Below, piece after piece: positions 5,427 to 58,856 of a stretch of 64,000 nt of DNA (position 1 is the stretch's first letter; each line of letters begins with the position of its first letter). The notes under the pieces were generated by a model. It made no database searches, was not told the DNA's origin, and saw only the letters and a program-made list of their open reading frames with translations. The stretch is from IMG/VR virus record IMGVR_UViG_3300024252_000004, positions 331,128-395,127 of that record. One strand, written 5' to 3'. The translations under genes were made by a program, and so were the position numbers.

Positions 5427-6986
5427 GTGCGTAAGCTTGCAGACTTAGAAGTTACAGAGAAGACAGATCCTGCTACCGGAAATAAAATCCGTATTAGCAC
5501 GACTGCTCGTCTTGCGTTGAGAATTATGTTTCCAAAGTTTACTGAAGAAAGGAATGCGAGACTAAATGATCGAATGGCATTCATGTTCAGTAATTCAGCA
5601 GGCAACGTTGTTCACCGTTTCAAATTAGGGAACAAAGATACCGGAGCATGGCGCCCAGCGGAACCAGATTCTGGTGAACAGAATAATAGAGAAGTTGCTG
5701 AAATTAGGTCAGGCCCAGGCGGAGACTTTTTCTTCATTTCTGCTATTAGGCAGGGATACATTGATATCTTAACATTACAAGATAATTGGAAGCAGGGAAA
5801 GCCTAATCAAGGTGGATCAAAAGGTGCTGGCGCAGGAGCCGGTGATGGAGATGTATCTTTGGCGAGTCTGAATATCGACATGAGTATATTCGGAGCTACT
5901 AATAAAACGAATTTGGACAGAAACAGGAGACATAACATGTCAGCATTGCGCATTCTTGCAGATTTAGCAAACAAGTTGGACAGTTTTGGTGAGACCAAGG
6001 CTGCTGATGAAGTAACCAAGATGATAGAGAAGAGAGCTAGGTGGCCTTTTGGAAAGGCGGACGAAGAGGAAGAATTTCCTGCTGCCCCTCCAGTCCCTAA
6101 GCCTCCTGTGTCTCCACAGTCTTCTCCATTTTTAAGAGGAACAATTCCTCCTGCGCCGCCTATGAACCCTGTTGTTACGACCAGTCCGGAAGGTTTCAGC
6201 GATGCTCCAGTTGCTGAACCAGCAGAGTCAAGAGTAGTTGGAAAGCTTGGTCCGATTAGGCCAGACAAAGATCCTTACTCTTACGAATTCCTTCCTTCCG
6301 AAGGTGTCTTCAGAGTTTCCAGCTACACTTATGGGCCAGGAGCGGCCCCTAACCCAAGGGCAGAGAGAGCCGTTGGCGCACATATTACAAGAGAAAATGC
6401 AAGAGCTTGGGCTGTATTGTCCGAGTATGTTCCAGAAGGGGACAAGTCCCCTTCCGAAGGGAGACATCTTCTCACAGAGTCTACAGGTGATCCTGCAAGA
6501 GACTGGAAAGAAGCACAGCTTCAGTTTGCTGGCTGGGTTAACTCAGGACACTTTGGTACTGAACTTCAGAAGAAGTTTAGACTTGCAGACCCGGGTATGC
6601 CAATGCGTCAGCTTATGGATGCAGAGCTTTCTCCAGAGAGTGCGGGATTCCTTGTTGAAAGGTTTGAGGCAATGATTGCTGGAAATGTTCTTTCGGATCT
6701 AAAAGATCCTGAGACTCTCCTCAGATATGCTCTTGAGCTTCAGAACTATGCTCATCTTGCTAACAGGGCAAGGGCAGTAGGTCAGCAGTCAATGAGAGAA
6801 TCTGAGACGGTCATGTCTCCGGGTGGATACCCATCATCATACCCATCATCATCAGAGGCTGAAGATTTCACACTGGCATCTATGGACTCAATAGAGGATA
6901 TAAGAAAGAAGGCATCTGCTAACGTAGATAGGCTTGCAGCACTTTTCACAGTCCCAGGTGGAAGCGGTCCTTTCGGAAGGGACTGA
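5427..6986 (+). CDS. hypothetical Pro/Gly-rich protein, candidate virion protein; internal in-frame start at 5937
   Basis: GTG start after GAGG; upstream TTCTAATA (5393); long ORF; internal TACTAATA + AGGAG + ATG. Confidence 0.75.
   Translation: MRKLADLEVTEKTDPATGNKIRISTTARLALRIMFPKFTEERNARLNDRMAFMFSNSAGNVVHRFKLGNKDTGAWRPAEPDSGEQNNREVAEIRSGPGGDFFFISAIRQGYIDILTLQDNWKQGKPNQGGSKGAGAGAGDGDVSLASLNIDMSIFGATNKTNLDRNRRHNMSALRILADLANKLDSFGETKAADEVTKMIEKRARWPFGKADEEEEFPAAPPVPKPPVSPQSSPFLRGTIPPAPPMNPVVTTSPEGFSDAPVAEPAESRVVGKLGPIRPDKDPYSYEFLPSEGVFRVSSYTYGPGAAPNPRAERAVGAHITRENARAWAVLSEYVPEGDKSPSEGRHLLTESTGDPARDWKEAQLQFAGWVNSGHFGTELQKKFRLADPGMPMRQLMDAELSPESAGFLVERFEAMIAGNVLSDLKDPETLLRYALELQNYAHLANRARAVGQQSMRESETVMSPGGYPSSYPSSSEAEDFTLASMDSIEDIRKKASANVDRLAALFTVPGGSGPFGRD
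5897..5904 (+). promoter_or_regulatory. internal TACTAATA element upstream of nested start 5937
   Basis: Exact motif 40 nt before in-frame ATG with AGGAG RBS (5925-5929). Confidence 0.55.
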
Positions 6987-8563
6987 TGGAGAAAAAGACG
7001 CCGGGGTTTTCATTAGATGATTTAGTTCCATCTGAAGAAGCTGCGTCAGGCATGCACGTTCCTGTAGGGGAGATGATGTTTGCAATCCCGAATAAAGCAG
7101 ATGATGAAGAGATTGAGGAGGAAGGTATGGAAAAGGAAGCCTTAGGCTTGACCAGTATGCCTCAATCTTTATATGGCGGCGAAGTTCTTGACCTGCCAGG
7201 AAGTCCTCAGCCTTCTGGACTCAGCAGAGAACAGGGCGAGGATGAAGAGACTGAATTTTTTGGAGCTAAAGAGGAGGGCGTAGATCTTCCTCCAGAACAT
7301 TACAAAACTCAGAAGAAACAGGGAATCTCAGAAGATGATGAAACAGATGAAGAATTCTTTGACTTCTTATTTACTAACAAAAGTCACAACTTCCTGAGAG
7401 AGGAATCAAACATGAGACACTTAATTGAGAAATTAGCCGAAGGGTTAGATAAGGTTGGAGAAAAGGACGCAGCACTTGTTGCATTGGCACTTACCGACGA
7501 TAGAATAAACTATTCGGAGTCTGTAAAACCTCCTGCACCTGATAATTCTGCCCCTGATTCGAGAAAAGATGAAATCTATAAAAAATTAGTATATGATTTT
7601 GGGATGATTACAGATTGGCTTTATCGCCCAGACGGTGAATTTACACCCAACAAATTAGAGAAAATGTGGGAAATGCTCAAGCAGCGCAAGCCTGCGCTGA
7701 GTGATGACAGAAAAGCGGAATTTATGAGTCTTGCAAAAGAGTGGGGGATGCAAGATCGTTATGGGGAAAGTTCTGCGGAAGAAGTTTCGACCGGCGAAGG
7801 AGTGCTTGCAAAGCCAGCAGAGCAGCCGTCTGGCGGAGTAACTCCGGTAGCTAAGCCAAGATCCGGCTGGGAAGGTTACTTCGCAAATGGTGGACCAAAA
7901 GGCATGAAAGCCGCCTGGGAAGCATGGGTGGCAGCCAACCCTAATCAGGGATATGATGCGTCTTTCTTGTCATGGGTTAAGTGGTACAGGAAGCAGGTTA
8001 CAGATAGAACCATTCCGTCTGGAGGTAATGTAGATGCTGTTCTTAGACTATTAGGAGGGGCTGCTCCCGCAGCGCCAGCCGCAAAAACAGATGAGGCAGC
8101 TAAGCCTGCTGAGGATACTGAGCCACCTATTGCAGAAGAGGGTAAGCCTCCAAGAGAGGCAATGGAAGAATACTTCAGAGCTATTTCTTCTAAGACAAGA
8201 GAAGCGAGAATCGCAGGTCCGTTAAGACTAAGAAACGCAAGAGTCAGAAGAAGAATCAGAAGACTCGGAGATCCAGCAGCGGCAGTAGAAGCTGTTCTCT
8301 CTTTCAGAGGCGGAGGCGATGTTGAGAAGGGTCTTGCGCTTTATGATAGTTATGATCAGACACAGACACCTGAAGGAACAGAAGAGCGCGGTGGCAAAAC
8401 CGTATCAACCTACAAGATGTCTGAGTTCCAAAACAAGGCAGTCAGTGATATCCTTACTCTGAAAGTAAGGGATTATAGAGCTGGCAGAGGACGTACCAGA
8501 AGAAGCGTGGCTTTTGAGGACAGACAAGATCAGCTTCTAAAGATGGCAGCAGAAAATTCCTAA
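6986..8563 (+). CDS. hypothetical acidic protein, candidate virion protein; internal in-frame start at 7412
   Basis: 525-aa ORF, TGATG overlap; internal TACTAACA + GAGG + ATG. Confidence 0.75.
   Translation: MEKKTPGFSLDDLVPSEEAASGMHVPVGEMMFAIPNKADDEEIEEEGMEKEALGLTSMPQSLYGGEVLDLPGSPQPSGLSREQGEDEETEFFGAKEEGVDLPPEHYKTQKKQGISEDDETDEEFFDFLFTNKSHNFLREESNMRHLIEKLAEGLDKVGEKDAALVALALTDDRINYSESVKPPAPDNSAPDSRKDEIYKKLVYDFGMITDWLYRPDGEFTPNKLEKMWEMLKQRKPALSDDRKAEFMSLAKEWGMQDRYGESSAEEVSTGEGVLAKPAEQPSGGVTPVAKPRSGWEGYFANGGPKGMKAAWEAWVAANPNQGYDASFLSWVKWYRKQVTDRTIPSGGNVDAVLRLLGGAAPAAPAAKTDEAAKPAEDTEPPIAEEGKPPREAMEEYFRAISSKTREARIAGPLRLRNARVRRRIRRLGDPAAAVEAVLSFRGGGDVEKGLALYDSYDQTQTPEGTEERGGKTVSTYKMSEFQNKAVSDILTLKVRDYRAGRGRTRRSVAFEDRQDQLLKMAAENS
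7372..7379 (+). promoter_or_regulatory. internal TACTAACA variant element upstream of nested start 7412
   Basis: One mismatch to TACTAATA, 40 nt before in-frame ATG with GAGAGG RBS. Confidence 0.45.
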
Positions 8564-8583
8564 GCCAATTTAGAATGGAGCAG

Positions 8584-8612
8584 AAACAAGGAGGGCTTAG
8601 CCTTCCTTGTTT
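8584..8612 (+). terminator. rho-independent terminator hairpin
   Basis: AAACAAGGAGGG-CTTAG-CCTTCCTTGTTT. Confidence 0.75.
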
Positions 8613-8626
8613 GCGTTAGAGCATAT

Positions 8627-8656
8627 TTTTCCAAATTTCCCACAGGGTGGTATAAG
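8627..8656 (+). promoter_or_regulatory. putative promoter, TTTCYA-N17-TATAAG class
   Basis: TTTTCCAAATTTCCCACAGGGTGGTATAAG; near-copy at 22238, same-spacing variant at 13509. Confidence 0.6.
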
Positions 8657-8729
8657 GGAGCATGTCCGTAGCTCTTAGTAGTTGCCTTGTATTCGCTTCG
8701 GTACTATTATCGCTCATGGAGGAATTTAC

Positions 8730-9740
8730 ATGTTGTTATCCGCAGATGTTGTAGTGGGGCTCGCTTGGGGCGATGAAGCAAAAGGAAAGATCACCTCAGC
8801 CTTGGCAGCTACAGGGCAGTACGACGCCGTGGCTCGCTGGGCCGGAGGCAATAACGCAGGCCATACGGTCTACGTCAATGGCGAAAAATACAAAACACAC
8901 CTTGTTCCAAGCGGCGTATTCCACGGAATGCTTTCCATCGTTGGTCCCGGCTGTGTATTGCATCCAGAAGAATTTGAAAAAGAATTGGCTTACCTCGCAG
9001 GACACGGATTCGATACCTCTCTTGTGAAGGTATCTCCGAATTGCCACATTGTTCAAGACGAGCATATTGAGTTTGACAAGCAGAACCTTGCAAAGAAGCT
9101 TGGCACAACCTCAAAAGGTATTGCACCGAGTTACGCAGCTAAGGCGGCAAGAACAGGTCTTCTTGCCAAAGACTATTACGAAGGCAGTGACATCCTATGG
9201 GACGGTCAGCTTAGCGGTGTATTATTGTGTGAAGGAGCGCAGGGGGCTTGGTTAGATATTGATCACGGGAATTATCCCTATGTGACCTCAAGCATTACAC
9301 TTGCCTATGGAGCTTGCAGTATAGGCTTCGCACCACAGCTCATTAAGAGCATCTGGGGCGCTGCCAAAATTTATGACACAAGAAGCGGAGAAGATCCTAT
9401 TTTTCCTGCGTCACTACTTGATGACCCTATGCTGTCAAAGGTTGGGGAAATTGGGGCCGAATATGGTGTGACCACAGGGCGCAGAAGAAAGGTAAATTGG
9501 CTTGATGTTGATATGCTGATTAAGTCTATCAATTTGACTGGATGCACACACGTTGTTGTTAGCAAATGTGATGTATTGGAAGAGGCCGGAGTTTACAGGA
9601 TGTATTGTAGAGGGATTCAGAACGAGCTTTCTGAGTTCGAAAGCATTACCGATATGACCGGAGTGCTGGAGACTCTTCTTAGAAAGAATTGTTCCCTTCT
9701 CAAGAGAGTGATCTTTTCCTCTTCACCGGAGAATATATGA
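8730..9740 (+). CDS. purA: adenylosuccinate synthetase (short form)
   Basis: WGDEAKGK, GGNNAGHT, EGAQG, DHGNYPYVTSS, TTGRRR, KCD; ATG 8730 follows GGAGG. Confidence 0.95.
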   Translation: MLLSADVVVGLAWGDEAKGKITSALAATGQYDAVARWAGGNNAGHTVYVNGEKYKTHLVPSGVFHGMLSIVGPGCVLHPEEFEKELAYLAGHGFDTSLVKVSPNCHIVQDEHIEFDKQNLAKKLGTTSKGIAPSYAAKAARTGLLAKDYYEGSDILWDGQLSGVLLCEGAQGAWLDIDHGNYPYVTSSITLAYGACSIGFAPQLIKSIWGAAKIYDTRSGEDPIFPASLLDDPMLSKVGEIGAEYGVTTGRRRKVNWLDVDMLIKSINLTGCTHVVVSKCDVLEEAGVYRMYCRGIQNELSEFESITDMTGVLETLLRKNCSLLKRVIFSSSPENI

Positions 9741-10573
9741 GTAAAAGAAGTATGTTGATATATCATGCCAATTGCCCTGACGGCTTTGGCGCGGCATATG
9801 CATTTTGGAAAAAATACGGATATGGTATTGATTACTGTGCAGTAAAGCATGGTGATCCGATACCGGATGATATTGACGACAGAGATATCTGGATAGTAGA
9901 TTTCTGTTTTAAGTTTCCAGAAATGGATGAAGTGATTGAAAGAGCTAAGAGCGTGGTCGTTATCGATCACCACATTACGGCTATGGAATCGATGGAGGGC
10001 GTTACTCGTCCGAATCTTGAAACCATATTTAAAATGGATAACTCAGGCGCGGTGTTGGCATGGAAATACCTTTTCCCTGACGAAGACGTTCCAAAGATTC
10101 TTCAGTACATTGAAGATAGAGATATTCATAAGTGGGAGCTAGAGGGTGCCGAAGCACTTTTGGCTAATCTTGATTCTAATGAAAAGAATCTTGAAATCTG
10201 GGATGATTTTGCTCAAGACATTGAGACCTCAAGAGGTTTGATGAATCAGATTAAGGGCGGAAGAATTCTTCTTGATTACAAAAAGGAGATCAGTGATTCC
10301 ATTAAGAGAGGCATGTATTACATGACTATCCGAGGAATTGAGTTCCCTGTCATTAACACCGCAGTGATATTCCGTGGAGACATCCTTTCGGAGATTGCTG
10401 ATAGTACAGATTTTGGCGTAGCGGCTGCTTATAATTTTGACGGAAAGCATTATGTCTTCTCGTTAAGGTCGAGAGGCGAAGTCGATGTTGCTAAGATTGC
10501 GGAATCGTTCCCCGGTGGTGGCGGGCACAAAGGAGCCGCAGGGTTTTCGGTCCTTACTATGGAGGACCTTTAG
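9737..10573 (+). CDS. DHH/DHHA1 family phosphoesterase
   Basis: YHANCPDG, VDF, IDHH, SLRS, GGGHKGAAGF; ATGA overlap with purA. Confidence 0.9.
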   Translation: MSKRSMLIYHANCPDGFGAAYAFWKKYGYGIDYCAVKHGDPIPDDIDDRDIWIVDFCFKFPEMDEVIERAKSVVVIDHHITAMESMEGVTRPNLETIFKMDNSGAVLAWKYLFPDEDVPKILQYIEDRDIHKWELEGAEALLANLDSNEKNLEIWDDFAQDIETSRGLMNQIKGGRILLDYKKEISDSIKRGMYYMTIRGIEFPVINTAVIFRGDILSEIADSTDFGVAAAYNFDGKHYVFSLRSRGEVDVAKIAESFPGGGGHKGAAGFSVLTMEDL

Positions 10574-10607
10574 CTCTTCACAATACCCGGAGTGAAAAAT
10601 TTAATAT

Positions 10608-11354
10608 ATGGAGATAAACAAGAGAACACCTCAAAGTATTCTTGAAGAGTTAGCGAATTACAAAGATGCGACAATGTGGAATTTTATCAAATGCTTTTCT
10701 AAATTATCCCTTGGCAAAGAGGAGATAAGAAGTTGCTATACAACTTATTACCACATTGGCGGAGAAGAGAATAATTCGTTAAGTTTTCGAAAAATCATTG
10801 AGAAGATGGGGCCAGGGTCAGGAGGAAGTTTTATTAAACTTTGTTTCACAGTTTACCCTGAGTTATTAGACGAGGTTTTTAGCGACGATCTTGATGACGG
10901 AATTATTGGGGCATACGGAATTAATTGGATCCGACTGCTGCTCGCGCAAAGTGGTTATGTCAGAACGATAAATATATACGATAAGTTGACTGACAGTTCT
11001 GACCCATACCTTTATCTGTTCGCGTTGGAGGTATGTTCGATTGATAAATTAAAAGAACATAAAAGTCACGAGTCAAAGAAGGCACGAAAAATTGTGTTCA
11101 GTAGACTTGGTCCTGTGGAATGTTTGAACGATATGCTTCAGGACGGTACGAAAGATATACGGGCGCTCGGGGTCAGATTCGCCCCGATGCATTGCGAAAT
11201 GTTTAACGAAATGAGTGAGGAGGCGGCTTTACAAATTTGCAACAATTTGCTAAAAAAAGGTGATGACGAACTAATCGTCATGTTAATGGGAAACAAAAAC
11301 AACAAGAGCAATGCCTTTTCTGGTTTGCTTAATTTTAGAATAGAAGAGATGTAA
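10608..11354 (+). CDS. hypothetical protein
   Basis: 248-aa ORF. Confidence 0.7.
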   Translation: MEINKRTPQSILEELANYKDATMWNFIKCFSKLSLGKEEIRSCYTTYYHIGGEENNSLSFRKIIEKMGPGSGGSFIKLCFTVYPELLDEVFSDDLDDGIIGAYGINWIRLLLAQSGYVRTINIYDKLTDSSDPYLYLFALEVCSIDKLKEHKSHESKKARKIVFSRLGPVECLNDMLQDGTKDIRALGVRFAPMHCEMFNEMSEEAALQICNNLLKKGDDELIVMLMGNKNNKSNAFSGLLNFRIEEM

Positions 11355-11356
11355 TT

Positions 11357-11542
11357 ATGGCATACGACAAATCACATTACGGTCCGAAACTCAAAGTCAA
11401 AGTCACCAATAGTATTGGTGGCAGAGTAGATTATCACGAAGGTCTTACTAAATTTGATATTGATTGGATTAAATCTAATCCCAACCTCCAAGTAGAGGTT
11501 CTCGAAGTAAGAAATGGAAGACGTAGGCAGCTTAAGAGATGA
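11357..11542 (+). CDS. small hypothetical protein
   Basis: 61 aa, tight packing, ATGA overlap downstream. Confidence 0.6.
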   Translation: MAYDKSHYGPKLKVKVTNSIGGRVDYHEGLTKFDIDWIKSNPNLQVEVLEVRNGRRRQLKR

Positions 11543-12126
11543 ACAAAGGGAGAGTTATATTTGTGCTCTCCCTTCTTGTTACGTTTCTGGTGGGGTTCAA
11601 AACAATGACTCCAGCTTATAACAAACTATCAGATGTGTCGTTTACTGTTCACGATGTGTGGGCCAATACAAGTGTTCCATTGGGAACGAGGTACATATAT
11701 CATGGGCAGGATTCGGCGCTTTCTGATAAAGAAGTTGAGAGGGTGATTAAGAAGACGGAAATAGCTATCCAACATTACTCCAAAGAAAAGGGCTATCCAA
11801 TGGAGCAATGCAGAACAATCGACACCTTAGAGATTTATTATGTGAGGCAGGATGAGTTGAACAAAAGAGGAAGATTTCCTATTTTTATGAATGAAAACCT
11901 TAGCCCCAATGATGTTGTGTGGGGAGTTTACGATCCTGTAAGCCAAAGCCCTCATTACGCTGTTTTGATGATATCGAATCCAGGCGGAACCAAGACTGAA
12001 GAGACTCAAGCGCATGAGTTGTATCACTATTGGTATGACAGATTTTGTTGGGAGCGGCATCACCCTGGAGATCCAGAGTCTGCTGCCCTTGAATTTGAAA
12101 CCTTTTATGAATTAAACTATATGTGA
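11539..12126 (+). CDS. membrane-anchored/secreted protein with HExxH zincin-like motif
   Basis: N-terminal hydrophobic segment; AHELYH. Confidence 0.6.
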   Translation: MNKGRVIFVLSLLVTFLVGFKTMTPAYNKLSDVSFTVHDVWANTSVPLGTRYIYHGQDSALSDKEVERVIKKTEIAIQHYSKEKGYPMEQCRTIDTLEIYYVRQDELNKRGRFPIFMNENLSPNDVVWGVYDPVSQSPHYAVLMISNPGGTKTEETQAHELYHYWYDRFCWERHHPGDPESAALEFETFYELNYM

Positions 12127-12132
12127 GTTAAG

Positions 12133-13176
12133 ATGAAATTAAGAAGAGCTTTAGCATTTGATGACGTGCTTCTTGTTCCAAGAAAATCAGAGATACCTTC
12201 CAGGCTTGCCGTTGATCCTTCAGTAGACGTTGGTGGAATCAAATTAGGCATTCCCCTTATTTCCTCTCCAATGGATACTGTAACAGAAGGACTTATGGCA
12301 AAACAACTTGGGCTGCTTGGCGGTCTGGGGATAATTCATAGGTACTGTTCTGTTAGTGAACAAATTGCTCACTTAAGAATACCAATTGCTGCCGGAGTAT
12401 ATGGAGGCTTTGCAATCGGAGTTGGAGCAGAAGCGGAAGAAAGATTCTCCATGATTCTGGAAGAATATGGCAGCAGCCTTGATGTTGTATGCATTGACAT
12501 TGCGAATGGCCATAGCACGCTTATGGAGAGGACCATTAAGAAAGTTAGAGATATGGCTCCAGATATTTCAATCATGGCAGGAAATGTTGCTACCAGAGAC
12601 GGATACAGGTTTCTCGCAGATCTCGGAGTAAATTCTGTCAGGGTAGGTATCGGCGGAGGAAGCATCTGCAAAACGCGAATTCAGACAGGGTTCGGCGTTC
12701 CTACATTTTCTTCTCTTCTTTGGGCCGCAGACGCTAAAGAGTCTGGTAAATACGAGGCGTCCATCATTGCAGATGGAGGCATTAGGCACCCCGGAGATTT
12801 AGCTAAAAGCATTGCGGCCGGCGCAGATGCTGTTATCTGTGGTAGCATCTTTGCTGGGAGCAAAGAAGCCCCTGGTGATGTAATCACATGGACAGATGGC
12901 ATTGCCTATAAGAAATACAGGGGAATGGCATCGGAAGAGATTCAGGTAGAGAAGAGGGGCGGAATGAAGCCGGGAACCTGCGCAGAAGGAACGTCTACTC
13001 TTGTTAGATATGAAGGCTCCATGAAGAGAGTCACTGAGGAGTTTGAGGGCGGAATTAGGTCCGCCTTAACTTACAACGGTTCTTGGGATATTCCACATTT
13101 CCAGGTGACCGCAGAATTTATTGAGATTACAGATTCTGGATTAAGAGAGTCTCACTCTCACGGAACAAGGAAATAA
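12133..13176 (+). CDS. IMPDH/GMP reductase family oxidoreductase, no CBS domains (GMP-reductase-like flap)
   Basis: FDDVLLVP, SSPMDTVT, VGIGGGSICKTR, IADGGI, YRGMAS...AEG. Confidence 0.92.
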   Translation: MKLRRALAFDDVLLVPRKSEIPSRLAVDPSVDVGGIKLGIPLISSPMDTVTEGLMAKQLGLLGGLGIIHRYCSVSEQIAHLRIPIAAGVYGGFAIGVGAEAEERFSMILEEYGSSLDVVCIDIANGHSTLMERTIKKVRDMAPDISIMAGNVATRDGYRFLADLGVNSVRVGIGGGSICKTRIQTGFGVPTFSSLLWAADAKESGKYEASIIADGGIRHPGDLAKSIAAGADAVICGSIFAGSKEAPGDVITWTDGIAYKKYRGMASEEIQVEKRGGMKPGTCAEGTSTLVRYEGSMKRVTEEFEGGIRSALTYNGSWDIPHFQVTAEFIEITDSGLRESHSHGTRK

Positions 13177-13177
13177 T

Positions 13178-13507
13178 ATGAGCGAAGATAAAAAGTTACC
13201 ATCAGTAGAAGAGGTGCTGGAAGAGTTTAGAGTTCTTAAGGGAAGGATTGGAGGTATTCAGAAATATCTGGCAGGGCTCCATGCTGAGGAAGAAGGCAGG
13301 GCTGGCAGTGTCGAGTCAGAGGAGCCTGAGGAGACTTATATTACATATAGTAGAGCCGAAGAGGTGCTCCACATAACCCAAATGATTACAGAACAGTTAA
13401 AAATTATGCACAACTTCTCTGATCACGAAATACAAATGGATGTTTCAAAAACTTCCGCCCGAGTGATCAAGGTACACAGCCGAATCTTAGACCACCTAGA
13501 GAAATAA
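13178..13507 (+). CDS. hypothetical protein
   Basis: 109-aa ORF with AGGA RBS. Confidence 0.65.
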   Translation: MSEDKKLPSVEEVLEEFRVLKGRIGGIQKYLAGLHAEEEGRAGSVESEEPEETYITYSRAEEVLHITQMITEQLKIMHNFSDHEIQMDVSKTSARVIKVHSRILDHLEK

Positions 13508-13508
13508 T

Positions 13509-13538
13509 TTTTCTAAGCTACTCGTAGGAGGTTATAGG
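13509..13538 (+). promoter_or_regulatory. putative promoter, TTTCYA-N17-TATA class
   Basis: TTTTCTAAGCTACTCGTAGGAGGTTATAGG, same spacing as 8627 and 22238. Confidence 0.45.
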
Positions 13539-13594
13539 AGGTCGTGCAGGAAATGCGTCTTCATCCCCCTACTCACAAAGGAGTTATATAGCTT

Positions 13595-15943: not shown

Positions 15944-15947
15944 GTAC

Positions 15948-15999: not shown

Positions 16000-16028
16000 T
16001 GAAAAACAATACATTTACGGAGTGAAAA

Positions 16029-28348: not shown

Positions 28349-28356
28349 TACTAATA
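28349..28356 (+). promoter_or_regulatory. TACTAATA putative late promoter element
   Basis: Exact motif, intergenic, 40 nt before ATG 28389. Confidence 0.55.
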
Positions 28357-28388
28357 AAAGTCGTTTCCTAGTTGAGGATCAATAAAAA

Positions 28389-46898: not shown

Positions 46899-46926
46899 TT
46901 GGAGAAAAGTGACCATGAAAGAAGTT

Positions 46927-47533: not shown

Positions 47534-49922
<2,389 letters not shown>

Positions 49923-49923
49923 G

Positions 49924-50394: not shown

Positions 50395-50404
50395 GGAGAC
50401 ATAA

Positions 50405-51577: not shown

Positions 51578-51590
51578 GAAACTTTTGAGC

Positions 51591-51620
51591 AACGGCACCG
51601 ACTATTCTGTCGGTGCCGTT
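51591..51620 (+). terminator. terminator hairpin after recA
   Basis: AACGGCACCGAC-TATTCT-GTCGGTGCCGTT perfect 12-bp stem. Confidence 0.75.
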
Positions 51621-51649
51621 TGACTTTGTACTGAGGAAACCGGTAATTC

Positions 51650-51657
51650 TACTAATG
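51650..51657 (+). promoter_or_regulatory. TACTAATG putative promoter element
   Basis: Intergenic, 21 nt before ATG 51671. Confidence 0.45.
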
Positions 51658-51670
51658 TAGGGAGCTGAAG

Positions 51671-52018
51671 ATGTTATTACGCTGCAACCCTGGTTGTAAA
51701 TTGAGTGATGGAACTACGGAGGGGTCTTTAGATCCTGATACAGATGAGGTCATCTGCAAAAACTGTGGTCTTGAACTAATGAATGTTGCCTCGTTCACCA
51801 AGAGGTCTATGAAAAGCAGTGGAGATGTAATTAAGAAGGACGGCAAAGCGTTCATTTTTGATTGCAAAACTTGTAAGAAAAAAGTTGAAACTTCCGTTGT
51901 TGATGGTGACCTTAAAGGCTTAGGCTGCGAGAAAGATTGTAAGTTCAATGTATCTCGTTTTATGATAAACTCGATGGAAAATGTTGGAACAAATGATGAT
52001 GAATCGAGAGAAGCGTAA
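51671..52018 (+). CDS. Cys-rich zinc-binding protein
   Basis: CNPGC, CKNC, CKTC, CEKDC; GGAG RBS. Confidence 0.72.
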   Translation: MLLRCNPGCKLSDGTTEGSLDPDTDEVICKNCGLELMNVASFTKRSMKSSGDVIKKDGKAFIFDCKTCKKKVETSVVDGDLKGLGCEKDCKFNVSRFMINSMENVGTNDDESREA

Positions 52019-52805
52019 ATACGCTTTGGATACCGGAATGATTAAAGACTTAGAAACCTTAATAAAGATTTGTCAAACGAATCTTAAGAACTCTCCAGAA
52101 TGCTTAGCATACTTGAGAGACACTAGAGGTATGTCTGAAGCCGCTATCGAAAACCACAAGATTGGCTACTTTCCACAGAGCATTAACATGCTTACAAAGT
52201 ACGTGTCTCGTGCAACCTTAGAAAAATTGAATATCATAGATTACTCCGGAAACTCAAAGTTTGCGGATTTTTACTATCTGGTATTCCCCATTTACAATGA
52301 ATACGGAGAGCCTGTCGGCATTAATGGCAGAACTCTCATTTCCGATACCCAAAGAGAAATGCTTGGAATAGCTAAATATGAAAATAGCTCATTCAAGAAA
52401 AGCACCACACTCTTTGGGTTTAATCGTGCGAGGGGTTCTATCCTTGCCAAGGGAGAAGTATTCGTCTGCGAAGGTAACTTCGACGCAATTCAACTGCAAG
52501 AGAATGGAATTAAAAACTCCGTTGCCATTTGCGGAACAGGATTCTCGAAAGATCATTTCGTTAGATTGGCAAGGTACGCACATACATTCACTTTTGTTCT
52601 CGATAGTGATGACGGAGGGAGGAAGGCCATTTCTCGTATTAACAAGAAATTTATGAACAAGGGTATAAAGCTCAGGTTCCTGTCTCTTCCCGACAAATAT
52701 AAAGATGTAGATGATTTTTTTAGAGCTGGTTATTCCCGAAGAGACTTTTTCGACACACTCACAGAGTGTAGTCCCGAATTAGAAAACATGGAGTGGAAAA
52801 ACTAA
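51993..52805 (+). CDS. dnaG: DnaG-type primase catalytic core (Toprim) lacking zinc-binding domain
   Basis: AYL..RG, IGY, FPI...G..VGINGR, KYENS, VCEGNFD, LDSDDGG, KDVDD. Confidence 0.88.
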   Translation: MMMNREKRKYALDTGMIKDLETLIKICQTNLKNSPECLAYLRDTRGMSEAAIENHKIGYFPQSINMLTKYVSRATLEKLNIIDYSGNSKFADFYYLVFPIYNEYGEPVGINGRTLISDTQREMLGIAKYENSSFKKSTTLFGFNRARGSILAKGEVFVCEGNFDAIQLQENGIKNSVAICGTGFSKDHFVRLARYAHTFTFVLDSDDGGRKAISRINKKFMNKGIKLRFLSLPDKYKDVDDFFRAGYSRRDFFDTLTECSPELENMEWKN

Positions 52806-53266
52806 TGAATAAATCAAAACTTTACCAACACAAGATTGTGGAGATCTCTTTTGATCAGGGCAAACTAAATAACTTCCCTGAGAGCAGAGGCATCGGAAAT
52901 ATGCTTTCCGACAATGAGTCCAACGAACAGATCCAAGACCTGAGAGAGGAGCTATTAGAAGAGATTTATGACATCATTCATGGCGATTCTTTAACCGATC
53001 ATCAGAAAAAGATCCTAATGATGCGCCTTGTTGGAAAAACTCAGAACGAAATTGCTGAACATCTCGGTATCACACAATCTGCCGTGCATAAGGCTTTACA
53101 TGGTAATATTGACTATAAAAATGACAAGAAAAGATATGGCGGAATTATTAAGAAGCTGAAGAAGATTTGTGGCAACAATTCTAACATTCAACGAATATTG
53201 AGACAAATAGAGGAAGCTAAAAATAGTGATCAAATCGCTGATGAGCTTTCTATTAATAAACAGTAG
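52805..53266 (+). CDS. sigma70 region-4-like HTH DNA-binding protein
   Basis: LTDHQKKIL..RLVGKTQNEIAEHLGITQSAVHK. Confidence 0.8.
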   Translation: MNKSKLYQHKIVEISFDQGKLNNFPESRGIGNMLSDNESNEQIQDLREELLEEIYDIIHGDSLTDHQKKILMMRLVGKTQNEIAEHLGITQSAVHKALHGNIDYKNDKKRYGGIIKKLKKICGNNSNIQRILRQIEEAKNSDQIADELSINKQ

Positions 53267-53289
53267 ATTCTACGAAGAGGGAACAGTCC

Positions 53290-53799
53290 ATGACCACAAG
53301 AGAAAAGTATCTTGCAAATATTGACAGAGTGCTTATGAAAACTTTAGCCAAGCAATCAAAGTCTTTGGCCGATAAGAACGCCATTAAGTACGATGATAGT
53401 CTTGTATCGCAAGGTCACATTAGAAAAATTGCATTTGACGTGTATAAAGTTGACAATGATCCTTACAGGGATCTTTGGATTCTTCAGGATGTTGACGGAG
53501 TCCCTCATTTAGTTAGAGCTTCGAACCCACAGTCCGAAGAGACGGTTGTTGGAGAGTGGTCTGCGACATCAGATTATGATAAGAGGAATATCACTTTGGC
53601 ATACAAGAGTAAGCCAATTGCAAGATTTTCTTCTGACACATATGGATTTACCCCTGAAGACGTATTAACATTTAAGGAAGCCCTGCTTGACAAGATTGGT
53701 GCTGATGATGGTTTCCTTAAGGAAGTATTCGCAGAGCAGCCAGAAGCTAAAAAAAGATCCCTCCTTTCAAGCTTCCCTGAGCTTGGCAAATACATTTAA
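53290..53799 (+). CDS. hypothetical protein, candidate virion/morphogenesis protein
   Basis: 169 aa; TATTAATA variant 39 nt upstream; IRKIAFD. Confidence 0.72.
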   Translation: MTTREKYLANIDRVLMKTLAKQSKSLADKNAIKYDDSLVSQGHIRKIAFDVYKVDNDPYRDLWILQDVDGVPHLVRASNPQSEETVVGEWSATSDYDKRNITLAYKSKPIARFSSDTYGFTPEDVLTFKEALLDKIGADDGFLKEVFAEQPEAKKRSLLSSFPELGKYI

Positions 53800-53809
53800 G
53801 GAACAGAAT

Positions 53810-55384
53810 ATGCAGAAGGAAATTTTCGATATAATCAAAGAAGCCCAAAAGGCACTGGAGCAGCTTGAGAATGGCAAGCTCTATACATCTGCATATGTTT
53901 GTGAGAGGTTCGTAAAATCTGCGGAAGAAAACCCGCATGATCTTCTCATCAACAATATGAGGAATGTAGTTCTGAGCAGGCTTCAGACACAACAGTTCGT
54001 TTCTCAGGCAGAGCTTACCGGCATCTATGACCAAATGATTGGCTTGGGTGGCGGACATTCTGCGTTCAGAAATGAGCTTGGAGACTTACTCACTGAGAAG
54101 CGCCAGTATGTAGAGCCAACCAAAACAGCTTCAGCACTTAGAGCCGACCGTGAAGGTGGACTAAGCATTGCTCCTGTAAATCAGGAACTCTCCGATGCAT
54201 TCTCAACTGCATTCGGATTCGGAAAAGACAACTCTTTTGGAACATATGCACCTCAGCAGGGCAACATGGTCAATAAAGTTGTTATCGCAGGATTAACCGC
54301 AGAAGGACAGACTCCTTCCGCAGTTGAAATAGTTTCTGAGAATGAGCACTTCGTATTAGTGGCAGCACTTTACAATGACGGCTTCAACAAAGTAGCAGTT
54401 CATGTTCCTGTCCAGATCAGTGGCGGGATTGTGCAGCCTCCAACAGCACTTGTTCAGGGAGAGGGTACAGTCCCACTCACCAAAGACAGTCTTTGGCTTG
54501 CCATCAAGGAAGCAAGAGACGAAAAAAGGCATGTTGCTCAGCAGAAATTCGCATCCCAGAGAACATTCGGCGAATCTGTTAAGGTAGCTAAGCAGGTTGT
54601 ACCTGCAAGTCTTGAGAAATTTGCACAGTTTGAAACTACATTAGTTTCGGCCTCAACAATGCACTCCGCTAAGTCAGTAGCAGAAGCAGTCACTATGGTG
54701 TCTGATGAGCTTAAGTCATTCGGAGCGTTTAATCCACAGGTAAAAATAGTAACGGCATCTGATAGAGAAATCGTATTCGATGCACATGTCCCTACAGAAA
54801 AGGGTATGGCAGTCGTTAAGGTTCCCGTCGAGATTCACAATGATCATCCAAACCTGCCGAACAGATTTGCAGCCGCAACTTCTGATGTAGAGCAGGTTTA
54901 TGATTTCAGCCAAGCAGGATATGCAAGGTTCCTTTCCGATGTGAAGGGTAACAGCAGAACTGTTAAGGTTGCGAGACATACCGGAAACCTATCGACAGCG
55001 TCTTACCACGAGCTTAACGACATGATGCTAAAAGGAATTTCGACTAAGGATTACACGCTTGCAGAGAATGCACTTTCGGTCATTCAGAACCGCTTCGACT
55101 CTTCACAGTTCAAAGCAGCATTTGATAAGTTCACTCAGTTATTAAAGCATTCCTCTACCGATCAGGACTCTGAAAGAGCCAAGCACATTGAGGCTGCGGT
55201 TCAGAGAGGAGACCTTATCAAGCACTCTACGACTGTTGAGCTTTACTGTCCTAAACTTGCTCTTCCATTGAGCAAAATTGCATTCGATAGCCAGGGTCGT
55301 CCGGTACCGGCAAGAACACATCGGGCTCAGAACGCAAATGAGGAAGAAGTTTTTATTTCCTCTTATGATATTAAGTTCAGCTAA
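53810..55384 (+). CDS. hypothetical protein, candidate virion/morphogenesis protein
   Basis: ATG 53810 after AAGGA; many K-x-A motifs; internally repeated V.VPV(Q/E)I unit. Confidence 0.75.
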   Translation: MQKEIFDIIKEAQKALEQLENGKLYTSAYVCERFVKSAEENPHDLLINNMRNVVLSRLQTQQFVSQAELTGIYDQMIGLGGGHSAFRNELGDLLTEKRQYVEPTKTASALRADREGGLSIAPVNQELSDAFSTAFGFGKDNSFGTYAPQQGNMVNKVVIAGLTAEGQTPSAVEIVSENEHFVLVAALYNDGFNKVAVHVPVQISGGIVQPPTALVQGEGTVPLTKDSLWLAIKEARDEKRHVAQQKFASQRTFGESVKVAKQVVPASLEKFAQFETTLVSASTMHSAKSVAEAVTMVSDELKSFGAFNPQVKIVTASDREIVFDAHVPTEKGMAVVKVPVEIHNDHPNLPNRFAAATSDVEQVYDFSQAGYARFLSDVKGNSRTVKVARHTGNLSTASYHELNDMMLKGISTKDYTLAENALSVIQNRFDSSQFKAAFDKFTQLLKHSSTDQDSERAKHIEAAVQRGDLIKHSTTVELYCPKLALPLSKIAFDSQGRPVPARTHRAQNANEEEVFISSYDIKFS

Positions 55385-55393
55385 GGAGTGGCT

Positions 55394-56326
55394 ATGACAA
55401 GATTAGAATTCATTCTTAGGCAGGCGGGTACAAATCGCAAACTGAGAAGCGCACTTAGAGGTGCTTATGCCGAAGAGTTAGAGAAAGTTGCTCAGCAAGG
55501 TATCCTTCAGGATTATCAGGGCGAAAAAACTAACTACGGCACAAGAGAGCAATTGCTCACCGAGAGAGGAACTTCTGATAAGGCGGACCAGCTTTACGGC
55601 GTAAACCCCGCAGAATACGGTACGCCTGAAATTGCAGACAGACCATTAAGTGAGTCTCTTTCTACAAGGTATGTCCCAGGTAAGCCTGGGGTATCTGCCG
55701 AAAGGGTTCGCGGAACAAATGGCGGCGTTTACAAAGATCCAAACACTAACAAGATTTATGATTGGAATGAGGGCTTTACTGACGAACAGGGCCAGAAGTA
55801 TCAGGGTAGCAGCGTACAAGGACAGACCGAAATGTTCTCTTATTCTGAGATTTGTGATCCTGACAAGTTAGTCAAAACAGCATCTGAGGATTACGACATT
55901 GCAACTTTCGGAACAGAAGCTCCTTTTGTAAAGATTAGTGTTTATGAAGATGATGATGAATATGAAGGTATGATTGCTTACTACAAAACCGCAGAAGATA
56001 TTGAGGCCAATAAGCTTTATGCGACAGGAAGCTACTTGTATGATAAAGATGGCAGTGAGGATCCTGTTGCTGGCAGAATATACGCAGAGACTTTGACAAT
56101 TCACAGCGAGCCGGGTATTGACTTTGTTCTTTCTGATAGGATAACTCCGGATGAGTTCCTGAGACTTATGCATGAAAACTTTACAGTAGTTTCCCTTACT
56201 GGAGCCTCTTACAGTCCTCCGATTAGTGATGAGGGATTCGATGCTCAGTTTGATGATTTCGAAGCAAAAAGGGATTGGGATGAAGGTAGAGACGAATACG
56301 CTGGATTCAAAATCTCCTCGGAATAA
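55394..56326 (+). CDS. hypothetical protein, candidate virion protein
   Basis: ATG after AAGGAG; EKVAQ, VKTAS motifs. Confidence 0.72.
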   Translation: MTRLEFILRQAGTNRKLRSALRGAYAEELEKVAQQGILQDYQGEKTNYGTREQLLTERGTSDKADQLYGVNPAEYGTPEIADRPLSESLSTRYVPGKPGVSAERVRGTNGGVYKDPNTNKIYDWNEGFTDEQGQKYQGSSVQGQTEMFSYSEICDPDKLVKTASEDYDIATFGTEAPFVKISVYEDDDEYEGMIAYYKTAEDIEANKLYATGSYLYDKDGSEDPVAGRIYAETLTIHSEPGIDFVLSDRITPDEFLRLMHENFTVVSLTGASYSPPISDEGFDAQFDDFEAKRDWDEGRDEYAGFKISSE

Positions 56327-56341
56327 AAACAAAGCACAAAA

Positions 56342-56389
56342 ACAAAAGTAGAGCCTGCCCGGTACAAATAAGGCAGGCTTTACTTTTGT
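56342..56389 (+). terminator. terminator hairpin
   Basis: ACAAAAGTAGAGCCTGCC-loop-GGCAGGCTTTACTTTTGT. Confidence 0.75.
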
Positions 56390-56403
56390 AGAAGGAGTTA
56401 TTT

Positions 56404-57111
56404 ATGGGCAGCAAAGTATTACGACATCCAGAGAAAGAAGAGATTATCTCCAAGCTATTGCAGGGAGAGTCTGTTAAGCAGGTCGAAAATTGGCTAAAGA
56501 AGAAACATCCAAAAACAAAGCGTCTCCACATCACATCCATGACTTTGCAGAAGTTCAGGAAGGAGTACCTTAATCTTGAAGGCGAAGCCCTGGAACAGAT
56601 TAAGGCTGCCAGAAAGAATTTTACAAAGGACTCTAAGGCTCTTGAAAAGCAGGCTATGGTTATGGCATCGAATTCTTACCAGGAAAAGCTCGCGGAGATT
56701 ATTGATGAGGAGATTGATGTCACTAGAAAGATGCTTGAAATGGAAAAGATTATCTCTTCCAGAATCGAGTATTACTTTAATTCTCTCAACAGTGGAGCTA
56801 ACCTTAGAGAGGAGCGAGTTTTCATTGAACTTTTGACTCAGCAAAGAGAGCTTCTTAGAGATTGGAAGAAATATGTTGAACGGGTTCCTGACCAGACAAT
56901 CGACCACAATATTAATATCAATGTAGTTAATGAGCAACTCACTGTTCTTAAGAGTATCGTTTTCGAAGTTCTTAAGGAACTTGACCCGACTTTGATTCCG
57001 GTTTTCGTTGAGAAGCTAAATTCTAAAATGGTAGATACACAGTACAACAATCAAAGATATTTGGACTATGTAGAGCCAGAGGTTAAAATTATCGATGTCA
57101 GTAACGATTAA
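56404..57111 (+). CDS. N-terminal HTH + coiled-coil protein, possible terminase small subunit
   Basis: SKVLRHPEKEEIISKLLQGESVKQVENWL HTH-like start; helical body; upstream of terL; function is inference. Confidence 0.55.
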   Translation: MGSKVLRHPEKEEIISKLLQGESVKQVENWLKKKHPKTKRLHITSMTLQKFRKEYLNLEGEALEQIKAARKNFTKDSKALEKQAMVMASNSYQEKLAEIIDEEIDVTRKMLEMEKIISSRIEYYFNSLNSGANLREERVFIELLTQQRELLRDWKKYVERVPDQTIDHNININVVNEQLTVLKSIVFEVLKELDPTLIPVFVEKLNSKMVDTQYNNQRYLDYVEPEVKIIDVSND

Positions 57112-57361
57112 TACAACGGAAAATCAGGAAAGGTATGCGGATCTCACACTCAGGGATATTGAAAGTGCTGCTGCATTCTCATCTTGGCTGTCTCAACACT
57201 TAGTTACTTATGCTACTGGAACAGTAAGTAAAGAGCACTTGTTAATATTCCTTACATATATACAGGATCGTATTGACGAGACAGATTCGGCTGATGGCCT
57301 TATGTGGAAAAAAGCAATAGTCGATCTGAAAAGTAGATTAGGAGACGACAGTGGACTTTAA
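57095..57361 (+). CDS. hypothetical protein
   Basis: 88-aa ORF overlapping neighbours. Confidence 0.6.
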   Translation: MSVTINTTENQERYADLTLRDIESAAAFSSWLSQHLVTYATGTVSKEHLLIFLTYIQDRIDETDSADGLMWKKAIVDLKSRLGDDSGL

Positions 57362-58856
57362 GAAGGAACTTATAGCGCTAAAGACAGAGCTTCCAAACCT
57401 CGGAATCCCCGAAGGTAAGGAGGCTATTGCTGTTAGTGTCTATAACATCTACAAACATCACGGTGTCTCTCCAACTGAGGAGATCATCCGTTTTGCAATG
57501 GACGTAAAGCTTCCTCCAAAGAATCACAACGATTACTACTATTTAGCCACAGTCGCTTATCTCAGAAATAATGGAATTAAAAAAGTCGCATATCCGTTAG
57601 GACATGGGGCTTTGAGCGAAGATTTAGAAGAAGAGTTTGATCTGGAGAAATGGTCAGGACTCGTACATAAAATTTACGAAGCAGTTCAAAGCGGAGATAT
57701 GTCTTATAGTTTTGCACTGGATTACTACTCTGGAGAACTCGATACTTCTCGACAAGAAGGCCATAAGTTTAAGGAGTGGGTTAAGTACTATAAGAATGGT
57801 GAGCATCTTAAGTATGACATTAGAGCAAGCAGGAGCAACGAAATGGAAAAAAAAGCAGATTTCCAATTTCCATTAAGCGGTTCAGGATTCTATCCGGCAG
57901 AGACCAAGCAGGTCTCTAAAGAGCGCGTGGAAGTTGATAACAAGAAAGGCGATTTCGAAGAGTGGAAAAGCAAACTCTACGTTGCTATCAGAAGACTTGA
58001 TAAGCTAATCAGACAGGGCGATCCACATATGAATTCAGATATTCATGCGGACCTCGCAGACCTTCTGCATGCTTTTGATATGGAAGTTAGAAAGGTAAGG
58101 CTTGCCTCTACTGCATCTGACCTTACCAAAAGAGCTGCTTTGGCTTTCAAAACTAAAGGTCTCAACGAACATGCAGATACTCTATATGCGTTAGCACAAG
58201 AGACTCCGCTTCCGCCAGAGATTGATGCAGCCCCAGATGATATTCTTGGAGACGAGCCACTTGGTGGCGGTTTGACCGAGGAGCCTGAGGTTCCTGGCGC
58301 AGAGGGTGAAATCCCTGGCGCAGCGCCAGAAAGTATTGGGGCAGGTACACCCGTTGGAACAGCGCTGAAAGGAGGAACGGGACCTAAGCCTGGAGAGTAC
58401 GAAGCTCTTAGCGGAGACATCACTCTCGATCAGGCATCTCGAAAGCTTGAAGAGATTGCAGGAAGACTTGCGGACAGACGAGTTATCCGTTTGCTTGCGG
58501 AGTTCGATATCATGCTTGATCAGCTTGGCGTGGCTCCAATGTTTCCCGAGCTTCCGGAAGCCCAGAGCAAGCTCATTGATAGTTACTCTTATGCATTAAC
58601 TCGTGTCACCAAGATGCTTGGTATGCTTTCTTCAGGGAAAAGTCTTTCGGAAATTGCTGACGCAAAAGAAACTGAGATTCAGAAGGGCGTAGACAAGGAC
58701 ACTGCGAAGACATTCAATGCTGGCGCAGAAGAGGACGCACCAAAGGGAACTGAGGCTATTGCTGACGAATTTGGCGCTACAACAGAACTTCCGCCGGAGC
58801 CAGGACAGGACGCTCCACAGCCGGCAGAAGCACCTCCTATTGACGAAGAGGTATAA
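57351..58856 (+). CDS. hypothetical protein, candidate virion/head assembly protein
   Basis: GTG start after AGGAG; KKVAY, KKAD, ALAQ motifs; Pro/Glu-rich linkers. Confidence 0.75.
   Translation: MDFKKELIALKTELPNLGIPEGKEAIAVSVYNIYKHHGVSPTEEIIRFAMDVKLPPKNHNDYYYLATVAYLRNNGIKKVAYPLGHGALSEDLEEEFDLEKWSGLVHKIYEAVQSGDMSYSFALDYYSGELDTSRQEGHKFKEWVKYYKNGEHLKYDIRASRSNEMEKKADFQFPLSGSGFYPAETKQVSKERVEVDNKKGDFEEWKSKLYVAIRRLDKLIRQGDPHMNSDIHADLADLLHAFDMEVRKVRLASTASDLTKRAALAFKTKGLNEHADTLYALAQETPLPPEIDAAPDDILGDEPLGGGLTEEPEVPGAEGEIPGAAPESIGAGTPVGTALKGGTGPKPGEYEALSGDITLDQASRKLEEIAGRLADRRVIRLLAEFDIMLDQLGVAPMFPELPEAQSKLIDSYSYALTRVTKMLGMLSSGKSLSEIADAKETEIQKGVDKDTAKTFNAGAEEDAPKGTEAIADEFGATTELPPEPGQDAPQPAEAPPIDEEV

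Follow-up and report, generated by a model that had tools for sequence, protein, structure and literature searches.

The last 64,000 nt of the virus record IMGVR_UViG_3300024252_000004 (positions 331,128 to 395,127, hereafter the window) encode three proteins, called here Pr1, Pr2 and Pr3, which share a short helical motif. The motif, A-x2-[LF]-x3-G-x4-A-[DL], forms the central part of a ~30-residue module with the consensus MIKELIKLANHLDSKGLxKEADYLDSIIKK. The module marks many unrelated proteins, and all carriers that could be traced are uncultured large marine phages. By sequence comparison, the family is previously undescribed and is absent from Pfam-A, PHROGs v4 and the sequences of the PDB. 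We regard as established that the module is real, portable, biased to N-termini, selected as protein, and associated with conserved start signals. It probably works as a docking ('address') tag, put by a large clade of marine jumbo phages on many unrelated proteins; we infer that it docks, that a receptor and a destination exist, and that two isoforms are made. A preliminary description of the same DNA had viewed the motif as a propeptide which docks cargo onto the prohead and is then clipped off.

The module family

Profiles of the conserved blocks of the Pr2 and Pr3 families found, as best non-self matches, the very N-terminal ends of two further proteins encoded in this genome. These led to a set of N-terminal copies, in which a Met is located exactly 15 residues before the Gly. 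A profile made from seven copies identified about 10 further copies in each of two related jumbo-phage records. Profile A6 was built from 23 N-terminal copies found in other proteins, Pr1, Pr2 and Pr3 being left out. A6 has 9 matches in this genome, seven being its own source sequences, about 10 in each of two related records (316 kb and 232 kb), 1 and 0 in two incomplete ones. In a search of 1.84 billion proteins, A6 matched the representatives of 1,963 protein clusters at E<=1e-3, and 60 of them at E<=1e-10; most matches fall at residues 1-32. The preliminary description had proposed a portable module, and a profile search for further members; members were found in number, and the portability is well supported by their spread over unrelated proteins.

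Copies were compared in the best 150 proteins, which have a median length of 159 aa (amino acids) and contain 198 copies. Most copies (135/198) are N-terminal, starting at residue 1-3; 48 are internal and 15 C-terminal. A single copy is found in 108 proteins, two or three copies in 42, some of which have one at each end. Conservation is nearly total at L5, L12, D13, G16, E20, A21 and D25. The polar residues D13, K19, E20, D22 and D25 are conserved at 94-100% across unrelated cargo. Position-by-position frequencies in the same proteins revealed no conserved residue or cleavage motif past position ~32.

Within one genome, 48% of the codon pairs encoding the same amino acid differ synonymously, and the DNA upstream of the copies is 33% identical. 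Selection acts on the peptide and not on the DNA, because copies share amino acids but not codons. A DNA-level repeat, or a mobile regulatory cassette generating common 5' ends, was also considered, and is ruled out by the synonymous differences and the unrelated upstream DNA.

The module was not detected in a search of 185,579 bacterial and archaeal genomes. It resides on IMG/VR contigs, many of which also encode Pr3 homologues. Searches of Pfam and PHROGs v4 with the three proteins, 45-aa module segments and consensus-like proteins gave nothing usable; faint matches to phrog_25811, a family of unknown function, reached E 9e-4 at best. The best hit of the module profile among PDB sequences, human melanoregulin (E 0.036), is at chance level and was discarded. 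Literature searches with the motif strings returned spurious matches only.

Module copies in Pr1, Pr2 and Pr3

The three 14-residue strings from which the analysis started (ANKLDSFGETKAAD, AEGLDKVGEKDAAL and ALAFKTKGLNEHAD; Table 1) are all found where they had been placed. Positions 5937 and 7412, given as landmarks for the first two, are occupied by in-frame ATG codons which encode M176 in Pr1 and M143 in Pr2. The three proteins had been called otherwise unrelated, and neither BLASTP nor hhalign detected similarity among them outside the motif. Direct comparisons of the three families with each other are not significant either (E 0.12), and kinship is, at the sequence level, visible only via the wider module family.

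When A6 was aligned by hhalign to each of the three families, the single best match fell exactly on the reported site (3/3). In Pr1 the match covers aa 180-209 (E 3.2e-5, probability 72%; best of 30 block-shuffles 0.063, reversed alignment 0.58). In Pr2 it covers aa 143-162, with Met1 of the module on M143 (E 1.3e-3; best of 30 block-shuffles 0.0093, reversed 0.12). In Pr3 it covers aa 261-285 (E 1.8e-4; best of 30 block-shuffles 0.012, reversed 0.0054). On this profile evidence the Pr1 site is a member of the module family, and the Pr3 site a probable relative. The assignment of the Pr2 site, the weakest of the three, is weak but contextually supported.

Conservation of the motif differs among the three families. 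In the Pr1 family the block MSAL.ILA.LAN.LD....KAAD is strongly conserved, being among the best-conserved parts of the protein. The block is strongly conserved also in the Pr3 family (TASDL..R.A..FKK.GF..G.D.L.K.AQE), in which G270 and Q283 are found in 120/120 sequences each. Conservation is only partial in the Pr2 family (M...L..L...L.K[IV]). According to the preliminary description, the motif is followed in two cases by an x-x-A site and then by a Pro/acidic linker. Both features are visible in Pr1 and Pr3, but the wider family does not keep them, its conservation ending abruptly after module position ~32.

It is unlikely that the three sites are mere look-alike hairpins of the helix-cap-helix type, with only Pr1, or none, truly related to the module. 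Hairpins in which a Gly caps an amphipathic helix and a second helix follows are common, and the chance match to melanoregulin looks similar. Neither the Gly nor the A-[DL] position is kept in the Pr2 family, and the families do not match each other significantly in direct comparisons. In a plain hmmsearch A6 gives Pr1 just 8.6 bits, the highest score among 30 shuffled proteomes being 8.2, and does not detect Pr2 or Pr3. Against a look-alike origin, an independent profile has its best match on each site, and beats both the 30 shuffles and the reversed control. The invariant Met of Pr2 aligns to Met1 of the module, Pr1 and Pr2 feature the same arrangement of upstream signals found in bona fide module genes (see below), and true N-terminal copies are the best non-self matches of the Pr2 and Pr3 block profiles.

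Used as a regular expression, the motif has 4 matches in the 123,277-aa proteome of the 395-kb genome, 0.75 being expected from shuffles; at least 4 matches were found in 3/500 shuffled proteomes. The expression was written after the matches had been seen, and the chance statistic therefore overstates the case and is weak evidence alone. The fourth match (genome positions 280757-281437) lacks profile support, and was set aside as probably due to chance. A possible weak N-terminal copy (MQDWLVLFAHELEKKGYLEN), noted by pattern match only and with low confidence, would require that a 202-aa open reading frame (ORF) located just upstream of the terminase gene (61870-62478) starts at M17. This site is not among the top matches of A6.

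Probable internal starts in Pr1 and Pr2

Pr1 is made of a conserved N-domain, the module, a Pro-rich linker, and a conserved C-domain ending with GPFGRD. Pr2 is made of a conserved acidic N-domain, the module, a variable middle, and a conserved C-terminal region. No significant Pfam or PHROG family was found for either protein. A Cpn60/GroEL-like chaperonin gene is located directly upstream of the two genes, and the order Cpn60, 94-aa protein, Pr1, Pr2, adenylosuccinate synthetase is kept in relatives. The in-frame continuity of Pr1 and Pr2 is real, because independent contigs from four seawater metagenomes reproduce the interval 5400-8600 without any indel. The region is identical in the four samples, except for a G>C variant at position 6657 in one of them.

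In both genes the module begins at an internal in-frame ATG, preceded by signals which resemble those of a separate gene. In Pr1, the box TACTAATAA is found 40 nt upstream of the ATG, in the codons GCT ACT AAT AAA (A162-K165), and an AGGAG Shine-Dalgarno-like (SD) site 8-12 nt upstream. Box at the same -40 distance, SD and ATG are present in 3/3 homologues for which DNA was compared. The codons GCT ACT AAT AAA, as the AGG codon of R172 which contributes to the SD, are identical in 4/4 Pr1 orthologues; identical codons are kept in only 21% of the 141 invariant amino-acid columns. In Pr2, the sequence TACTAACAA, which differs from TACTAATAA at one position, is similarly found 40 nt upstream of the ATG, and is followed by an SD-like GAGAGGA site. 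Exact TACTAATAA copies are located at -49 in 3/5 Pr2 homologues. M176 of Pr1 and M143 of Pr2 are invariant in their families, and both genes thus feature a conserved internal start with a ribosome-binding site. Because internal box, SD and ATG are conserved, also at synonymous sites, Pr1 and Pr2 probably each give a long form and a nested short isoform led by the module (Pr1-S, M176-D524, 349 aa; Pr2-S, M143-S525, 383 aa). The public gene call P0006 corresponds exactly to Pr2-S.

Larger Pr1 homologues (P0003, P0004, P0005; L121:10001-11956) carry an insert of ~130 aa with a zinc-protease-like HEMGH motif, which is missing in Pr1 of the window. The insert would be confined to the long form, because it precedes the internal start, being located just upstream of it.

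The TACTAATAA box in the genome

No upstream 8-mer of the genome is more enriched at starts than TACTAATA, of which 10/15 copies are located at -70..-12 of ORF starts (19-fold enrichment). Exact copies of TACTAATAA are eight. Seven reside 27-45 nt upstream of called starts, the eighth inside Pr1, and five of the eight precede module-coding starts. Since about 1.3% of the positions qualify by chance, we calculate that the probability of such a placement is of the order of 1e-12. The box also precedes a tail-region gene encoding a 1,516-aa protein and a gene encoding a 765-aa protein. A copy with one mismatch precedes a gene whose tail-sheath match is weak and below threshold. The TACTAATA(A) box is a candidate promoter element, possibly a late one.

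Pr3 and the terminase region

Pr3 is a core protein of the phage clade, encoded ~3.6 kb upstream of the large terminase subunit gene. It can be placed in a packaging neighbourhood because the terminase adjoins as a landmark. No match was found in Pfam and PHROG, nor a specific one in PDB and BFVD, both of which were searched by Foldseek with the model. In the AlphaFold2 model, based on 84 homologues, the N-domain (residues 1-285) is all-helical and confidently predicted, the Pro/Glu linker (296-342) is disordered, and the C-domain (349-455) is helical. The module-like hairpin is predicted with a local confidence (pLDDT) of ~95, and consists of helix 252-268, a K-G-L turn and helix 272-283, followed by the conserved A-Q-E. 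Residues ~186-293 superpose as one up-down four-helix bundle by VIA-align, and the hairpin is accordingly formed by the last two helices of the bundle. No Met, SD or box was found at the site. As modelled, the Pr3 motif belongs to the structure of the protein and is not a peptide that could be detached. VIA-align retrieved generic four-helix bundles only, with Z up to 10.5, below the level meaningful for helical bundles.

In relatives, proteins with the module, or with a module-like segment, are grouped near Pr3 and the terminase. One is the 312-aa protein, in which the copy is degenerate in the window. Its orthologues have a clear copy, internal or C-terminal, located after a conserved '...RYSPDRVG...FPGG' domain ('...FPGGxAALQSxM').

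The Pr2 and Pr3 families have a second short motif in common, F..WV.[WY]Y....HL (hhalign E 0.005; aa 321-349 of Pr2 and 134-163 of Pr3).

Proteins carrying the module

Sequences following the module are hypervariable, and the carriers are mostly small, acidic and fast-evolving proteins. Arrays of 7-8 adjacent small genes, each led by the module, span ~10 kb in related records. A Pfam census of the best 150 proteins found only one HEAT and one LysM protein. Cargo recognized by Pfam or PHROG in this genome and in relatives includes a LysM domain with a phage lysozyme, kinase-like proteins, and a SOD C-terminal domain. LysM-like, cell-wall-peptidase-like and lipoprotein-like stretches were read by eye only. 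Three module-led genes (204, 524 and 271/278 aa) are clustered outside the window, and a gene for a TubZ/PhuZ-like tubulin (PF00091 1e-12, TubZ-like_C 1e-6) adjoins this cluster (Table 1).

Genome, relatives and features of the window

The window is the terminal part of a single-contig record of 395,127 bp, which has a G+C content of 43.8%. The genome was detected almost exclusively in seawater and other marine DNA metagenomes; one lake-water run contained about 1/10 of the sampled words. No relatives were found among GenBank phages, at either DNA or protein level, by megablast and tblastn, and no kinship to phiKZ-like phages was detectable. All homologues of Pr1 (n=5), Pr2 (n=7) and Pr3 (>260) are metagenomic, and many reside on contigs of 350-420 kb. 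The genome also encodes PhoH and the TubZ/PhuZ-like tubulin. Neither the T4-type prohead protease (PF03420, Peptidase_S77) nor gp23 (PF07068) is present in the 395-kb genome, in which a Peptidase_S49 protein is the sole prohead-protease candidate seen.

A 325-aa protein encoded between Pr3 and the terminase has no module. It contains the stretch TSGYRSPSAQARVM, presumably similar to a signature of cell-wall peptidases; the protein has no Pfam match. By eye, the protein resembles the cargo domain of L090, a module-led protein of the related record G001.

Table 1. Position of the features described in the text. Coordinates refer to the window, unless otherwise specified (G000, whole genome).
Feature	Position	Strand	Remarks
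Cpn60/GroEL-like chaperonin, first gene	3452-5053		
Pr1, long ORF	5412-6986	+	524 aa; gene call P0001 starts 5 codons later
TACTAATAA box in Pr1	5897-5905	+	exact copy
AGGAG SD-like site in Pr1	5925-5929	+	
Module copy MSALRILADLANKLDSFGETKAADEVTKMIEKRA of Pr1	5937-6038	+	hhalign, A6 vs Pr1 family
Pr1-S, proposed	5937-6986	+	
ANKLDSFGETKAAD	5967-6008	+	Pr1 aa 186-199
Pr2, long ORF	6986-8563	+	525 aa
TACTAACAA in Pr2	7372-7380	+	one-mismatch copy of the box
GAGAGGA SD-like site in Pr2	7398-7404	+	upstream of ATG 7412
Module copy MRHLIEKLAEGLDKVGEKDAALVALALTD of Pr2	7412-7498	+	hhalign, A6 vs Pr2 family
Pr2-S, proposed	7412-8563	+	
AEGLDKVGEKDAAL	7436-7477	+	Pr2 aa 151-164
Second Pr2/Pr3 motif, in Pr2	~7946-8032		
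TACTAATAA box, exact copy	28349-28357		40 nt upstream of ORF 28389
Cpn60/GroEL-like chaperonin, second gene	48252-49922		
312-aa protein	55388-56326	+	degenerate module copy
TACTAATAA box, one-mismatch copy	upstream of 56404		
Pr3	57351-58856	+	501 aa
Second Pr2/Pr3 motif, in Pr3	~57750-57839		
Module-like hairpin of Pr3	58104-58199	+	aa 252-283
ALAFKTKGLNEHAD	58131-58200 (segment)	+	Pr3 aa 263-276
325-aa protein with TSGYRSPSAQARVM	59552-60529		
MQDWLVLFAHELEKKGYLEN, possible weak copy	61918-61980	+	pattern match only
Large terminase subunit	62488-64000	+	cut by record end; PF05876 2e-15, phrog_675 2e-54
Peptidase_S49 gene	genome 321332-322330		~9 kb upstream of window start; PF01343 4e-37, phrog_53 'head maturation protease' 2e-39
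Three clustered module-led genes	G000 85800-92285		outside window
TubZ/PhuZ-like tubulin	G000 94843-96342		
LysM + phage lysozyme, module-led	G000 119536-120222		outside window
Fe/Mn-SOD C-terminal domain, module-led	G000 137319-138029		outside window
Kinase-like protein, module-led	G000 198701-199855		outside window

Function of the module

A docking tag is the most economical reading of the data, because a hairpin of 30 residues is not expected to be stable alone and the polar positions are conserved. The module would consist of two helices, the first amphipathic, joined by a Gly turn, and the lone hairpin would expose a hydrophobic face. It could then supply the missing part of a helical bundle, the rest coming from a conserved receptor encoded by the phage or from a second copy of the module, and docking of this kind would gather diverse cargo at one place. 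Pr1 and Pr2 would carry the tag at internal starts, yielding a long form and a tag-led short form each, and Pr3 would hold a built-in, non-detachable hairpin as half of a four-helix bundle. The models of Pr3 and of the natural two-copy protein P0137 support packing of the bundle type. A shape search of the ESM Atlas and a Foldseek search with the P0137 model returned no specific match, and the ESM Atlas feature search with P0165 no usable one.

Several points weigh against this reading. The link of Pr2 and Pr3 to the family is a profile-profile one only, and short amphipathic helix-Gly-helix hairpins can converge. The box is absent in 2/5 Pr2 homologues, and the internal starts are predicted from signals in the sequence. 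C-terminal and tandem copies indicate that the N-terminal position is not essential, and the lysozyme cargo could be a plain endolysin, a protein not expected in capsids.

As to where docking would occur, the capsid interior, with packaging and later injection as for the capsid targeting sequence of T4, is by analogy the leading candidate, because of the T4-like arrays of leader and cargo, the box in common with tail-region genes, and the module-bearing orthologues near Pr3 and the terminase. A broader scheme, which we consider tentative and rather unlikely as a whole, assumes that one address tag, at either end of a protein, and one conserved receptor direct proteins to the procapsid or another compartment built by the phage. 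The arrays would be a rapidly evolving arsenal of injected proteins for host takeover or anti-defence, the internal promoters of Pr1 and Pr2 would supply tagged short forms next to long forms with an untagged N-terminus, and Pr3 would be part of the receiving scaffold.

The propeptide hypothesis of the preliminary description is stricter than a docking tag, as the module would dock cargo to the prohead core or scaffold and then be clipped by the prohead protease, the cargo being injected effectors. By analogy with the capsid targeting sequence of T4 this is plausible, though of low probability. Nested in-frame genes are typical of head-assembly genes; the S49 gene resembles head maturation proteases, and among the neighbours of Pr3 and the terminase are proteins with the module or a module-like segment. 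The TACTAATAA box is common to module genes, the genes for the 1,516-aa and 765-aa proteins and, with one mismatch, the gene with the weak tail-sheath match. A constant leader followed by hypervariable cargo in tandem arrays mirrors the loci of T4 internal proteins (PMC3012670). Clipping is however disfavoured by the lack of any conserved residue or cleavage motif after the module, and by the absence of PF03420 and PF07068. Copies which are internal or C-terminal (63/198) fit poorly with an obligatory N-terminal propeptide. The Pr3 hairpin is modelled as integral to a folded bundle, and the cargo includes an endolysin-like LysM-lysozyme and a SOD-like domain.

Alternatively, the module might be a self-association element, pairing hairpin to hairpin in a four-helix bundle which links tagged proteins or closes proteins with two copies. 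Many proteins do have two or three copies, often one per end. P0137 was modelled as a compact four-helix unit (pTM 0.64; helix 2-14, turn, helix starting at 18), and the Pr3 hairpin packs on two other helices in its model. The near-invariant polar residues D13, K19, E20, D22 and D25 suggest a specific partner over generic hydrophobic pairing, and single copies prevail (108/150 best proteins); self-association, in place of a separate receptor, is considered unlikely. The prediction of a complex between two module copies (score 0.18, the mark being 0.42) speaks neither for nor against it.

It is very improbable that the module is a nucleic-acid-binding hairpin of the HeH/SAP type, which the succession of helix, G-[LF] and second helix may suggest as a lead, or an envelope- or export-related tag of cell-wall-active proteins, at which the LysM-lysozyme and the LysM-like, peptidase-like and lipoprotein-like stretches seen by eye may hint. 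No SAP, HeH, LEM or Rho_N match was found in Pfam, with a cut-off of E<=10 for 10 module segments and of E<=1 for 10 consensus-like proteins. The consensus is nearly charge-neutral and not basic, the module itself is hydrophilic and does not correspond to a signal of the Sec, Tat or SAR kind, and most cargo has no envelope signature.

Comparison with known systems

To our knowledge, little has been learnt, apart from T4 and the phiKZ group, of how jumbo phages choose which of their hundreds of proteins are directed to the virion or to a common destination. A single, easily recognised tag of 30 residues on ~2,000 clusters would be a sequence handle by which the candidate cargo of an uncultured clade can be listed from metagenomes. 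It would also be a simple reagent for finding the receptor, by reporter fusions and pull-downs, and could serve in engineering as a portable tag for packaging or docking. The internal start signals of Pr1 and Pr2 predict nested products which are missed by automatic annotation of such genomes, and single out TACTAATAA as a putative promoter element of the phage.

SAP and HeH motifs, which we take to have similar length and the same layout of helix, G-[LF] and helix, differ from the module, in which the loop is shorter, a basic surface is missing, and no Pfam match is found.

Propeptides of the phiKZ/SPN3US type are cleaved at S/A/G-x-E. In this respect Pr3 is similar, as the conserved A-Q-E follows the hairpin directly (Q283 in 120/120 sequences); in contrast, A-Q-E is not conserved after N-terminal module copies. 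Head and ejection proteins of jumbo phages are reported to lose N-terminal propeptides (PMC5694885, PMC10052503).

In the P22 scaffolding protein, which can carry foreign cargo into procapsids, the coat is bound by a C-terminal helix-loop-helix. The AlphaFold2 models of Pr3 and P0137 similarly have two short helices joined by a tight turn, which would be the docking element here. The P22 element is C-terminal and strongly basic, whereas the module is mostly N-terminal and roughly charge-balanced, and the module profile has no sequence match among PDB chains.

The lambda C/Nu3 and herpesvirus UL26/UL26.5 pairs are in-frame nested morphogenetic genes. Pr1 and Pr2 show no homology to them, and their isoforms are predicted from box, SD and ATG. 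The arrangement is similar, as an internal in-frame start with its own signals would give long and short products with a common C-terminus. In the larger Pr1 homologues the likeness would extend to the long form, which alone would carry the metalloprotease-like HEMGH insert.

The capsid targeting sequence (CTS) of T4 measures ~10 residues, and the gp21 protease cuts it off after L/I-x-E. The module is longer (~30 residues), is predicted to form a helical hairpin, is unrelated in sequence, and occurs also at internal and C-terminal positions, without a conserved site of the L/I-x-E type after it. In place of the T4-type protease and gp23, this genome has a head-maturation-protease-like gene of the S49 type. 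The internal proteins of T4 are diverse, and the CTS is their only common part (PMC3012670). The module resembles the CTS of IPI-III, Alt and other T4 proteins in being a short constant leader, mostly N-terminal, of diverse and fast-evolving proteins encoded at variable loci (PMC3012670).

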